Shown: positions 462 through 6,500 of the stretch, in pieces
Numbering within the stretch: the stretch's first letter is position 1
Layout of the letters: the number at the start of each line of letters is the position of its first letter
Assembly (NCBI GenBank): GCA_001655205.1
Contig: LPNZ01007498.1
Location: 1-41,345 of the forward strand
Direction: 5' to 3'
Length of the DNA: 41,345 nt
Source of the DNA: Lenisia limosa
Lineage: Eukaryota; Protista; Breviatea
The notes under the pieces: model-generated
What the model saw: only the letters and a program-made list of their open reading frames with translations
Database searches by the model: none
Told to the model about the DNA's origin: nothing
Translations under genes and position numbers: made by a program

Positions 462-2935
462 TCAGGTGAAACTCTCGATGATTTGATGGAGGCACTCCCT
501 TCCCATTGCAAAGTCCATTTCATCAGTTCCGTTGCAGGTGTAAGGTCGATGGAATGCCCTGTTTTGTTAGCGTACTAGTAACAAAATAACAAAGCACAAG
601 CACACTTTCTTCTCCACATAGCATCAAATTGCTCTGCAAGCGTTGTCCACATTTCCTTCATTTTTGGCCCATTAAGTCCAAGAGCAACGATATCTCCAAG
701 TGGGGGGTCTATCAGAACGTCAGATCCTTACATTCATTCAAAGCAAACCGAAATGACAAGCCATCCACTTATACCTATTGTTGGGATGACCGATACAAAT
801 CTTGACTCTAAGATGTGACATCATACTCAACAAAACAAAACAAAACACAGTGTTTATGGTTATTGGTGATTATTCGGTATTCACAGACCTTGACCACGGT
901 CAAAAGACCCACTGGAGGAAAATGCTCCAATTATTTGAGTCTGAGAAATAATAATAAAAAAAAACATAGGATGACATAAAGGACAGCACAGCTACCACCA
1001 ACTAACGACACTCATTCATCATGGGGTATACATGTCTAGGCTTAGAATGTCTACTTCCTATGGCAACCACAAACAATTGACGACCTAACCCAACTATCCT
1101 TGCCTTGCTCTGCACCACCAACTGAATTTTCGATGGCAATATCAGGGAGGCAGAAGAGTTCAGAACTTGAGACTGTTGACGATGACTAATCAATTAACCA
1201 TAAACATATCAACAGTCAAGAATTCAGTCTCACGAATCACATACGAGAGTGAATATAATATGATAGTATATCATATTATTTCTTTTTTGTACACTCGAGA
1301 TGAACCCTTGTGTTATCTTCGTTCATCATTTCGACTCTAAAGTCGGTCATACTAGTATGGGTCAACATATACTCAAACTTTTTTGGGACCAGAGGGAGGG
1401 AGTCATCATTACTCACCTCTTGTGCTTTTCTTTCCAGAAAGGGGCAGAAAAACATGCATTCAGCTTCACCTGGCAGATCCTTGGTGAAGTTGCAAGTTGG
1501 AACAAAAGGACGACGACACCTGAACGTTACCTCACTTATCGAAGAGGATTACTCGGGTTTTAGCCAACCTTGACATAAACGGTACCAAATGGTTGGCAAT
1601 TGCAGAGTTGACGTCTTTGAAACTCGGTGCCACAATGCCTTTAGCAAAGAGGTTACTGTATATTTTCTCCTAAAATATGATAATAGATCGAGTAAAAATC
1701 TACACCAAAACTTCAGAATTATGAATGAAGATCACCAACGCAAACCTGCTGGTAACAAAGCACTTGGGCTGCAGCAATGTCGAAATAGGGAAGCGACAGG
1801 ACGACATTGTAAGGTTCCACAACACATGATGTAGACTATGGGGATGGTCAGAAATGCAGCAAAAGTGTGGTATTAATAGTTGCTCAAGCCTTGCAATTTA
1901 ACAAAGGAAAAACGAGATTATTTGAACGAATCCCCTGCCATAGTGACACTGGTCATACATACCCCAACATACTCCACAGTGGGGATACGCAGCAGATGAC
2001 AGAACGTTGGCTTTGGGGTATATTTCTTCGAAGTGCTCAAGAATCTTTGACACTAACCCAGAACCTGAGAAAGGTCATGAAAACATCTATTCAATTCTGC
2101 TAATGATATCATGACTTTAACAAGATTAATACAGGTATCTAATAATTGCACTCACAAAATACCTGTGCCTCCACCCAAAGAGTGAAAAAGGTGAAAACCT
2201 TCAAAAGTATCGACTGTGGAATATTAGAGAAGGAAAGTGTACATTTTCAACGCAACTCCTACTTTTCTCAAGATGGGACCGGATGCCTTGGAGTATCTTT
2301 GGGATAAGCTAAAATATGAATCATTCAACCCTTCAACAAAATCTGTTAGCATATACAAGAAGGGTGGATGTAAACAGCATGCCGGACAAACCGTCTCATC
2401 ATCAGGGTAGTAGCCCTTGGTGAAGCAATTTCCAGCTGAAAATCCGTTTGTAGAATAAAAGTACTGACCTGAATGATTCATAAAACATATGATATACACT
2501 GACCTGAATGAATGAACCATATGATATATATATAAATATATATACAAACACTTTGTTGCATCCCATTCCCACCATCAATGGTATGTGGGAGCCTTCCCAA
2601 GTTGCCAGAGTTTTTATCTGTGTCAATAACTAGACCATTCAAATGCCAATTCCTACAACAGAATAAATAGAGCGGTATTTCCACATCGCCAACTAATCAG
2701 TTACCCACCCCGATTCCGTCTGATGATAGTACGCACTGTTATCTTGAAATGTAAGACAAGCGGAGGAACCACAATTCTGAGGTCAAGAATGCAAGATCCC
2801 GCCACCCTTTTGGCCGAGTCTCGAGAACACTTCATGACCAAAGCTGATGCCAGCCCCACCAACCTAGAGGAAATATGACAGTTTTGGGTTGTAATAGTTA
2901 GGAGTTAGAAACCAACGGACTTGTAAGGACAGCAT
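462..2935 (-). CDS. Highly divergent tubulin-superfamily protein (about 17 or more exons)
   Basis: Manually spliced exons give MLSLQ|VGGAGISFGHEVFSRLGQK|DNSAYYHQTESG|NWHLNGLVIDTD...|SQYFYSTNGFSAGNCFTKGYYPDDET|LIPKILQGIRSHLEK|IDTFEGFHLFHSLGGGT|GSGLVSKILEHFEEIYPK...|STSCVVEPYNVVLSL...|EKIYSNLFAKGIVAPSFKDVNSAIANHL...RFVSVIPTIGSDVLIDPPLG...EQFDAMWRRK|AFHRPYTCNGTDEMDF. The GGGTGSG signature, VVEPYN, AGN-x-x-KG and the C-terminal F-x-AM-x-RRKAF are colinear with tubulins. Exons between about 840 and 1520 are ambiguous, and the stop at 462-464 is tentative. Confidence 0.9.
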
Positions 2936-2958
2936 TACTTTCCCCTTCAATAGAGTAC

Positions 2959-2978
2959 AGAGAGAGAGAGAGAGAGAG
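2959..2978. repeat. (GA)n microsatellite just upstream of the tubulin start
   Basis: agagagagagagagagagag. Confidence 0.9.
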
Positions 2979-3229
2979 CAGGAATCTCCGGGAGATGAAG
3001 TTAAATTGTTTTGTTGAGCGAAGGACTTGTATATTTTATAACCAAGTGTGATGAAGTGTTAGATGCGTGGAGAGGAGGTCTGGAGGAGGTAAGCAAAGCT
3101 GCTGGGCTGCTGGGAGAGATGCAAACTGTGTCACCGGAGGTGTATACTTGCAATATACTTGGTATCAAGTGCGTAGGTGGTGTAAGGTGCAGCAGGGGTG
3201 CAGTAAGGTGGGGCAAATGGGGGGGGGGG

Positions 3230-3308
3230 NNNNNNNNNNNNNNNNNNNNNNNNNNNNNNNNNNNNNNNNNNNNNNNNNNNNNNNNNNNNNNNNNNNNNNN
3301 NNNNNNNN
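3230..3308. other. Assembly gap (N run); others at 7781-7838, 10317-10432, 18545-18624, 28658-28748 and 28895-28988
   Basis: N characters. Several gaps abut G/C homopolymers or (TA)n tracts. Confidence 1.
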
Positions 3309-3527: not shown

Positions 3528-6500
3528 TCACAAATCCTTTGCCTTTTGCTGTTTGCACAACTTCTTATGCTCTTTCCAAGCCTCCTTTTGACATATGGCT
3601 GAGCAGTAGAGGGCAGACCTGTACCTCATTATTGGAATGACATAACAGAGTCCATCTTCCTCACAAAAAACCGACGCAGCCACAACCACTTCCCCCAGAC
3701 TTGCATATTGAACACAATTTGAGTCGGACAGACGGTTCGTCAGCTGTTTTACCACAGTGCATGCAACTACAATGTCACCTAACATACATGTACAATTCCC
3801 AGAATAGATACTACAAAATATGTATCTGATTTTATAAAAAATAAAACTGACTTTTGAAATGAAACATAAAACAAATCACCATTTTAAAAGGACTATACAA
3901 TGATATGGACCACAATAATATCAACCTTTTGAGAGAGGGGCAGGCAGGGGTTGTCAGTTTCTTGACACCTTTGAGAGCGTTTTGTCTGTTTGCGAGAGCA
4001 GGTTGCTTGTGAGTCTTCTTATCAGGGTCGCTAGAACGAGTTAGAAAACCACAAGGTAATAGTTATCATCTTCTTGTATTGAGGCAGAGTCAGTCTACAT
4101 CATATCTTCATAATTGGCATTGCAGGGGGTGAAAGTGCCTACGGTGAGAAAATGACCGTGTCCGTTTCAAAGATGGTCTTAGGCAAAAGGGAGACTTTCG
4201 TGAGGCGTTCCATCGTCTATAATGTCAGAATAAGTGGGTAAAATCCTATCAAAACAAATAAACAATGATTTTCCATGTTAGCCCAAATTAATACAGCCCA
4301 CATACTTCCTTCTTTGCCTCCTCTGTAGCATCGCTTTGTACTCTAAATAGTTATCATGAAAATACCTTTCTTGTCACAAAATATGATTGAGGAGTGACTG
4401 GGATAAGTCATGACCAATTTACTAAGGAAAACAGGTTAAGACTTATCACGGTCATTGTACATTATATCAATAAAATAGCTGGATACTTTCTATTTTCATC
4501 GTCTACGCTTGATAAGGGGCGTTGCTCTATCACTTCTCTGTTCAGTACTGTCATCAAGTTCCATTGAGAATTTTCTGTCACAAATCTACATCATGAGAAA
4601 AGAGGTAAGGTTGAGTCTCTGTTCATTATTGAGGATTAACTTAGCCTACTCTGGACACCTGTTGACCTCTTCAAGGTTCGAAAAAGACTCAAACCAAGCA
4701 GTTTCTTAAGGACTTGCATGAGTTCCCGGATTGTGATCGCCTGGGTTGTCAATACCATAAATCAACTGAGTGCAGCGCAGGCCTACAAAATGTGCGTTAG
4801 ATTGAAGACAGGACAGTCGTAGGAATCTGGGGGAGTTGCGTAGTTCGGTACAAACCTGCATGACAAACACAGGCACTGTCTATGGGATCAGAGAAGGTCA
4901 CCAAGTGCAACTGAGGAAAACAGCTCCTACTTCTTGTTTTACGCATTGAGGAACAAGCGTTGCACCCTGCGAGAGGGAAGAAAGCTACATTATTAATTTT
5001 TGGAAGATGTAGGAAATATCAGTCCGAATCCTTCCACGCCAAGTCTGATAGCTGAAGGGAGGAGATACAGACAACTATTTTAAAATTACCAAGATGTTGT
5101 GCCAGTATTACAAGGGTAATGGAAGGAGGAGTTTGCCATCAAACAAACCCAAAAGAAGTTGTCGGAGTTGCCCTTCAGGAACAGCGCTTGCATTAAATTC
5201 AGTTTTGCCTAAAAGTGAATTGAAAGAATAAATCGAGCGCAGAGAAAGGACGTTTGTCATAATAACGTAAAGAGATACTATGTTGTTTTGTAATATCATA
5301 ATACTATTATAATATAATATATTGGATATGTGAAAATGAACAATTAGAAATGTTGGTACCAAGCAACTTGGTGCCAACCCACAATACATACTTCTCCGTC
5401 AGATGGCTGAATAAACGGTAGAAGGGGTTCAACGGAACAATTGTTCGCAATCAACTGCGGTACAAACTGCAGCAAGCCAATTTTCAGAACAATTGGGACT
5501 CAGACTTTTTGATAGCTGATAATAAGTCATTGTAGTGGAAGTCTCACCTTTTTGGACCTCAGGGTCATGCAGACAGTCGGCAAGGGCTGAAACCGTGCGT
5601 TGAGTGTAGTTGGAATATGCTGCGTCAGAAGGCTGAGGGTAAAGAAGGGAGTTTGGAATGGAGTTAGATATCAAAACACGCTACCCACTAAAGCACTTCG
5701 TTGGAGAATACTGAATATGGGAACTTCTGCATTTCTGATGCCAGCTAAAACAATGAGAGGGAAACGTTATTCTCGAAAACTCTAAATGTAAGTTCACTTG
5801 AGCTGGATAATAGAAAATACGATCTGGACACATACCCCAGCATTTCACAGCTTTATGCAAGAACTCAGGTTCAGTAGTCATCATCTCGATGGCTGGAAGC
5901 GATTTAAGCTCATACTGACGACTACAGAAAAGATCAGAATATAACCAGAACATTTAGTAATATAATCTATCGATCGATCGATCTATCATATTAAGATAAA
6001 CACTGGTGTTAAAAATATCACATTTTAAGTAGTGGATGGAAAGGCCTGTAAGTTTAGTGTATGTATTGTATTATACACTGCCTTGAGCTCACGTGTGGCT
6101 CCGCTGAAAGAATTCAATTTGTCCCAATGAGCGAGGTTGTAGGGGGCCGGTATTAAGAAAAGAATCTGGTACACCCATCTTACAATGCTTTGGGGATGAA
6201 AGAAATGTAGGGCCTGCTCCAAGAGGAAGCGGCTTATCCTGTCTGTGCAAAGGATCGGAATGAGGATGAGAGTACTGGAAGTTCTAAACAATAAGTTAAC
6301 GTAAGTTCAGACGCAAGAATAACACTTTCCCTCCACTATCAAACATTTAAAAATGGGGGCGCTACACAAACAATAGGATCCCCGCATTCGCATGCGCTGC
6401 TCTCATCACGGAGGATTTTTAATATTTCAAGAACATATTCTACTTGGTTTTTGTTGATTTCTATTTCCTCTTCCTCATCCTCATCATTATTTTCTTCTTC

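Follow-up and report, generated by a model that had tools for sequence, protein, structure and literature searches.

A shortened, transcribed orphan tubulin in the breviate Lenisia limosa that may be a fast-evolved beta-tubulin paralogue

Tubulins are among the most constrained of eukaryotic proteins. Breviates, placed close to the base of the group that unites animals, fungi and relatives, have a cytoskeleton that has hardly been studied. All known tubulins are of very similar length (PMC4202323); divergent alpha and beta paralogues of ciliates, and protist tubulins lacking the tail or the P-loop, have nevertheless been described (Findeisen et al. 2014, PMC4202323), and the authors of that survey suggest that divergent tubulins serve as structural units and not as formers of dynamic polymers. 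Here we analyse a tubulin gene of the breviate Lenisia limosa, located on a single contig (GenBank LPNZ01007498.1, C7498 in our numbering, positions 1 to 41,345; hereafter the window) of a eukaryotic assembly of 49 Mb in 11,727 contigs (GCA_001655205.1). Like the divergent tubulins of ciliates and other protists, its product would be a fast-evolved paralogue with an absent tail and altered nucleotide loops; those proteins, however, are still assigned to alpha or beta by phylogeny, whereas this one cannot be placed by its sequence. The chances appear to us about even that it is a functional, transcribed orphan tubulin of 371 residues that arose in the breviate lineage as a duplicate of a beta-tubulin gene and then evolved very fast and shrank. 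Divergent tail-less paralogues are a kind already known, and it is the extent of the reduction that is new. A literature search on the tubulins of L. limosa returned nothing.

The gene lies on the minus strand and runs from an ATG at 2935 to a TGA stop at 464-462, which are exactly the limits proposed by a first-pass annotation made from the letters of the sequence. Our model comprises 16 exons and 15 introns, with 1113 coding bases and a joined frame that is open throughout. Two contigs from a polyA RNA run (X1) of the same study as the DNA cover the locus. RNA contig 1 (896 bases) joins the blocks 2161-2210, 1973-2062, 1745-1835, 1567-1668, 1417-1517, 1123-1185, 889-940, 775-807, 605-708 and 348-557, while RNA contig 2 is unbroken from beyond 3100 to 2806 and is then spliced to 2742. 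Ten of the 15 splices are therefore seen in RNA (557|605, 708|775, 807|889, 940|1123, 1185|1417, 1517|1567, 1668|1745, 1835|1973, 2062|2161 and 2742|2806), and all ten skipped stretches read GT..AG on the minus strand. The RNA-joined frame is open from the signature exon through the stop codon, which itself lies in RNA. The gene is transcribed and spliced, where the first-pass annotation had allowed for a pseudogene without spliced expression; the arrangement of the exons from the seventh to the stop codon, the junction of exons 2 and 3 and the open frame are direct observations. Because the spliced RNA itself carries the C-terminal deletions described below, the shortening belongs to the mRNA and not to a faulty gene model. 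Introns 3 to 6 (2708-2214) lie outside RNA cover and were modelled from GT-AG sites, frame and homology. Intron 6 still has a fixed acceptor, since the RNA reaches 2210, an in-frame stop stands at 2226-2224, and the sole AG between them is at 2215-2214.

The ATG at 2935 is the transcript's first AUG; the 294 bases upstream contain no ATG on that strand, and an N-terminal extension is ruled out by this absence together with an in-frame stop at 3061. Intron 1 (57 bases, 2920-2864) is kept unspliced in the only RNA contig that spans it, and with the intron retained the first AUG encodes a peptide of just 24 codons. Given that no other ATG lies in these upstream 294 bases and that the frame is closed at 3061, a productive message would have to remove intron 1; the retention may reflect an unprocessed transcript or regulated intron retention. 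The shortened N-terminus (MLSLQVG) reported at the first pass hence hinges on the removal of this intron. The 5' untranslated leader occupies 2936-3100, where RNA contig 2 is contiguous over 2806-3100 and continues about 79 bases past 3100; a (GA)n microsatellite is found within it at 2949-2986.

Membership in the tubulin superfamily is safe, as judged from sequence. The superfamily signature in loop T4 has been given as [S/A/G]-G-G-T-G-[S/A]-G (PMC10056924), and the GGGTGSG of the present protein satisfies it. Membership is safe because the joined model, used in tblastn, matches the genome's own gamma locus at E 3e-13 and beta locus at E 1e-12 (residues 72-370); it also matches the C-terminus of alpha at E 2e-4. 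Searches with single exons gave little. Against Pfam, with its tubulin families PF00091 (Tubulin) and PF03953 (Tubulin_C), eight single-exon pieces gave a single weak match, exon 8 to PF00091 (E 0.25), and whole-genome, exon-wise family scans did not pick up the locus. A search of PDB sequences with exons 9 and 10 returned zero matches even at E 10, and the ESM Atlas returned only meaningless short matches to exon 10. The 34 residues of exon 15 found no relative, and no self match, among 1.84 billion representative proteins, a query length that detects close kin only; a single match of 4103 residues was spurious. A 50-residue open stretch around exon 15 found nothing in the JGI metagenomes, and an Rfam scan of the window found nothing either. 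Within the genome exon 9 matched only itself, which indicates that there is no close paralogue.

The motifs of the protein were compared with the alpha (452 residues) and beta (446 residues) encoded by the genome itself, both rebuilt from their loci, and with mouse alpha to epsilon by reading the sequences in a paper's supplement. Exon 1 contributes five codons from the first AUG (2921-2935, donor GT at 2920; the intron that follows is the one left unspliced in RNA), and exon 2 (2806-2863, placed by the frame and by the RNA joint to exon 3) encodes strand S1, loop T1 and helix H1; T1 carries GGAG, as the first pass had read it, and has GGAGIS against GQCGNQ in beta. Exon 3 (2709-2742), whose start is given by the same RNA joint and whose modelled end is the only frame-compatible donor, is a remnant of the H1-S2 loop region. 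Exon 4 (2552-2652), modelled from GT-AG sites and the alpha/beta alignment, holds strand S2 and the T2 region, with nine residues inserted after T2; a hidden mini-intron within this insertion was considered and dismissed, since the stretch contains no GT. In exon 5 (2392-2468, modelled) the T3 loop keeps AGN and has lost its second Asn (AGNCF against GNNW in beta), and exon 6 (2263-2308, modelled outside RNA cover) encodes helix H3. Exon 7 (2161-2213), with RNA over 2161-2210, an acceptor forced at 2214 and a preceding intron in phase 1, carries strand S4 and five residues that open the signature, which exon 8 (1973-2062, bounded by two RNA joints) completes before helix H4. The signature is thereby intact as GGGTG|SG across the observed splice 2062|2161.

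The second half of the protein is placed by RNA joints throughout. VVEPYN is preserved in the T5 loop in exon 9 (1745-1835), which extends to the start of T6. Exon 10 (1567-1668) encodes the remnant of T6 and helix H7; QQEKI stands in place of DNEAL, across an RNA-confirmed splice, so that T6 reads YQQE against DNEA in beta. Exon 11 (1417-1517) corresponds in the alignment to the T7/H8 region, unrecognisable against NLVPFPRLHF of beta and without the GxxNxD pattern, although the Asn is retained. Exons 12 (1123-1185, between the joints 1185|1417 and 940|1123) and 13 (889-940) encode a divergent intermediate domain, and exon 14 (775-807) is short and follows the deleted helix H10. Strand S10 and helix H11 are read in the translation of exon 15 (605-708), with RRK|AF spanning an RNA-confirmed splice into exon 16 (coding part 462-557, within the block of RNA contig 1 at 348-557), where H11-H12 is followed directly by the stop, in RNA. 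These readings agree with the first-pass annotation, which had reported GGGTGSG, VVEPYN, QQEKI, the lack of an evident GxxNxD motif, a beta-like C-terminus and the absence of an acidic tail. The 3' untranslated region extends at least to 348 (348-461, RNA contig 1).

In the alignment, beta residues 25-34 and 43-47 (H1-S2 loop), 291-299, 321-337 (H10), 348-354 and 360-364 (around S9) and 424-446 (tail) have no counterpart, and the protein is about 75 residues, or about a fifth, shorter than beta (371 vs 446). From T3 to T5, by contrast with these regions, it is colinear with beta with zero gaps. Beta-like motifs are found in T3 (AGN..KG.Y), in the HSL before the signature, in H11 (EQF.AM.RRKAF) and in H11-H12 (DEM.F), whereas VVEPYN is compatible with alpha and beta both; at the same sites mouse delta has MSMAGGTGSG (T4), IVQNYN (T5) and KAWNMFSSKAF (H11). 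The label "mosaic" given to the protein at the first pass is apt, although beta accounts for most of the pieces.

The positions of introns can carry information on class where sequence is saturated, and here they point in the same direction. Both beta genes of the genome (C11300 and C11109) have four introns: one interrupts codon 1, two fall in phase 1 within codons 88 and 127, and the last separates codons 174 and 175 (phase 0). Two of these four, those at codon 127 and at 174/175, are matched by introns of the orphan gene at the identical codon and in the identical phase. The codon-127 intron stands five codons before the GF that leads to HSLGGGTGSG, and its acceptor is forced; the 174/175 intron stands four codons before VVEPYN and is seen in RNA; both are gap-free to their motif. 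A third intron is in phase 1 like that at beta codon 88, from which it is two codons off in a local gap-free alignment and six columns off with MAFFT, in a region where the alignment is ambiguous. We calculated a chance of ~1e-3 for two exact matches out of four, given 15 introns over 1113 positions, and neither shared site in the orphan gene is a MAG|R proto-splice site. There is no intron at either site in the alpha, gamma and divergent alpha-like genes, and in gamma and epsilon the reading frame passes through both without a break. The alpha introns (codon 8 in phase 2, directly before GF in phase 0, inside VVE|PYN and after codon 302) coincide with none in the orphan gene. The shared introns thus favour a runaway beta paralogue, and the class assignment is drawn from intron positions and motifs, with delta compared by reading a single mouse sequence. 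A new class with delta affinity, as the first-pass annotation had proposed, is not borne out, T3, T4, T5 and H11-H12 being beta-like or alpha/beta-like and two beta introns standing at the identical codon and phase.

The overall sequence is less decisive. Identity is 29.0% to the genome's own beta and 26.3% to its own alpha, with BLOSUM62 sums of 436 and 337, respectively. By domain, identity to beta is 32% in the N-domain, 22% in the intermediate domain and 38% in the C-terminal helices, where alpha reaches 29%. We built a maximum likelihood (ML) tree and applied the approximately unbiased (AU) test with this genome's own tubulins only. The orphan has the longest branch in the tree (1.47 substitutions per site). 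Hardly any alternative is rejected by the AU test: grouping with beta costs 0.9 log-likelihood units (lnL; p 0.53), with epsilon 1.1 lnL and with gamma 1.5 lnL, and grouping with alpha costs 3.6 lnL at a marginal p of 0.07. The earlier observation that the protein fits no standard class by sequence is therefore confirmed. Compared with beta-tubulin as a whole, the protein shares the beta form of T3, T4, T5 and H11-H12 and two to three of the four beta introns in place and phase; it differs in its low identity, in GGAG instead of GQCG, in the lost T7/H8 motif and the missing H1-S2 loop, H10, part of S9 and acidic tail, and the gene has twelve extra introns and does not group with beta in the tree.

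The genome has a set of conventional tubulins against which the orphan can be set. Alpha genes form a tandem pair on C10309 and occur once on C4454; beta is found on C11109 and C11300, gamma on C3350 and epsilon on C10590, the last two each with class-typical motifs, and two divergent alpha-like genes lie on C11109 near 49 kb (L022, about 47.5-50.4 kb) and on C3995. Since separate gamma and epsilon genes exist, the orphan is the orthologue of neither. Among the genes for delta, epsilon and zeta that the first-pass annotation had suggested looking for, epsilon is found, and no delta or zeta was found in exon-wise and pattern scans, both of which are blind to the orphan gene as well. The pattern scan, for an uninterrupted GGTGSG, gave 43 matches against 46 in a control, of which only the known tubulins are real; matches on C586 and C9749 did not hold up as tubulins when checked. 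The N-terminal exon of L022 seems to require an 11-base skip without a GT to keep its frame. Short runs of N with duplicated flanks occur in the alpha locus on C10309 and in the two beta loci, whose gene models need patching from the sister copy.

Several observations weigh against a beta origin. Residues shared only with beta number 38 and those shared only with alpha 27, a difference that is not significant (p 0.21). T1 has the Ala of alpha, the first intron is one base off alpha's first intron, and the best ML tree, which is also the best topology in the AU test, pairs the protein with L022 beside alpha at a weak support of 45/53, a beta clade being acceptable as well. Together with a few oddities common to both proteins, namely the 7-mer DTFEGFH before T4, AGN.F in T3 and ILEH in H4, these points suggest that the orphan could form a single divergent family, alpha-derived or unplaced, with the alpha-like genes on C11109 and C3995, which are likewise divergent and tail-less. 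We consider such a family unlikely. The two joined branches are the two longest in the tree, and we take their pairing as long-branch attraction, because from T4 to H7 the orphan is no closer to L022 (27% identity) than to alpha (38%) or beta (34%), the value for L008 being 34.5%. Moreover, L022 shares with alpha a phase-0 intron immediately ahead of GF and the C-terminal motif WYVGEGMEEG, and the alpha-like proteins keep H10, whereas the orphan has beta's introns and C-terminal motifs, the two gene structures being otherwise unlike. Of 13 residues in helix H7, 6 agree with mouse delta, 5 with epsilon and only 2-3 with beta, and the Trp that alpha, beta, gamma and epsilon have in H1 is missing; the delta resemblance noticed at the first pass persists in H7 and in no other motif named there. 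Mouse delta also shares with the orphan the lack of an acidic tail and of a canonical T7 loop. As an epsilon gene is present, no separate delta or zeta candidate came out of the genome scans, and delta signatures drift in some lineages (PMC10056924), the orphan could be a strongly derived, shortened delta or zeta orthologue acting with epsilon at the basal body. This seems to us distinctly unlikely: in T4 (HSLGGGTGSG), T5 (VVEPYN), H11 and H11-H12 the protein follows beta and not mouse delta, a fast-evolving delta is not expected to drift toward beta motifs, and delta proteins carry extra loops and reach about 455 residues, against 371 here. Epsilon may be present where delta or zeta is missing (PMC4202323), and exon-wise scans weak enough to miss the orphan gene, in an assembly of 11,727 contigs, cannot demonstrate the absence of either.

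Intron 15 of the orphan gene (K|A before H12, phase 0) is at the exact position of an intron in the genome's own epsilon gene (L021), a 49-base phase-0 intron at 3646-3694 of C10590 between K and A of the RK|AH motif. This common intron speaks in some measure for the delta or zeta orthologue as well; it may be older than the tubulin classes, and with roughly a dozen introns in the epsilon gene we calculated a chance of ~16% for one such match. About one third of LECA (last eukaryotic common ancestor) introns in paralogous families are common to pre-LECA paralogues, and ~5% are so via parallel gain (PMC9120149); the introns shared with beta could therefore be ancestral and not beta-specific. 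Since introns predating old duplications are common in paralogues, the orphan shares introns with two classes (beta twice, epsilon once) and its sequence is roughly equidistant from all classes, it might represent an ancient, independent lineage outside the six classes that kept ancestral introns also kept by beta and epsilon. We regard that history as highly improbable, in view of the beta-specific motifs and because beta has 2-3 of its 4 introns in common with the orphan, a much larger fraction than epsilon with 1 in roughly a dozen; one would expect members of an ancient class to occur in other organisms, and exon 15 found none among the representative proteins or the JGI metagenomes. Least probable of all, in our opinion, is a decaying, functionless but still transcribed relic of a beta-tubulin. 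The extreme divergence, the loss of core secondary-structure elements, the low RNA depth and the retention of intron 1 in the sole RNA contig over it, with translation ending after 24 codons, could all be seen in such a relic. Unselected drift to ~29% identity, however, would break a frame of 1113 bases in 16 exons with 15 pairs of splice sites, all of which are intact and argue for selection; and a nearly perfect signature, T5 and H11 beside changed loops, with T3-T5 gap-free against beta, is a pattern of selection.

Two further features of the locus may be mentioned. The interval 1290-1351, inside intron 11, is a short repeat of about 62 bases that lies outside the protein: at least 344 first-look candidates with 89-95% identity occur across the genome, and the DNA-run depth over it is 1000-4000x, which suggests a short interspersed or MITE-like repeat in high copy. 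Upstream of the tubulin gene, the last exon of a neighbouring gene, at 3531-3785 on the minus strand, has a MYND zinc finger at its end (Pfam PF01753, E 3e-7), and a gap of N at 3230-3308 separates that gene from the tubulin leader.

If the gene is indeed a reduced beta-tubulin paralogue, a beta gene would have been duplicated in the breviate lineage, and the copy would then have diverged very fast and shrunk. The protein probably still binds guanine nucleotide, because its core from T3 to T5 is colinear with beta and the phosphate loops are kept; such binding, which we infer from the sequence, may be weakened by GGAG in T1, by the lost second Asn of T3, and by Gln and Phe replacing the Asn and Tyr that contact the base. 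Its lateral contacts (the H1-S2 loop and the M-loop region) and its minus-end face (T7/H8, H10 and S9) are deleted or rewritten, and without a tail there would be nothing for motors, microtubule-associated proteins or modifying enzymes to use. With the lateral and minus-end elements lost and the tail absent, it is very unlikely that the protein takes a normal position in the wall of a microtubule, and the earlier suggestion of a probably non-canonical polymerisation is in keeping with the loss of these features. Conservation is best at the plus-end face and in H11-H12, so that head-to-tail docking onto an alpha-type partner would be plausible, and the protein may act as a specialised non-lattice or end-binding subunit and not as a polymer former. 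As a long shot, the partner could be one of the orphan alpha-like tubulins, likewise tail-less, and the two would constitute a private second tubulin pair of the breviate, a non-canonical dimer or filament serving a structure peculiar to the lineage, for instance a flagellar root or filopodial support; this would be a eukaryotic parallel to the bacterial BtubA/B.

Exon-wise family scans overlook genes such as this one. As a reduced member of its superfamily, the protein would be a natural experiment in maintaining the tubulin fold without polymerising, in which about 75 residues have gone, a complete helix and two loops of the lateral contacts among them, while the nucleotide signature was kept. 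Along with the orphan alpha-like genes, it suggests a hidden layer of specialised tubulins in breviates.

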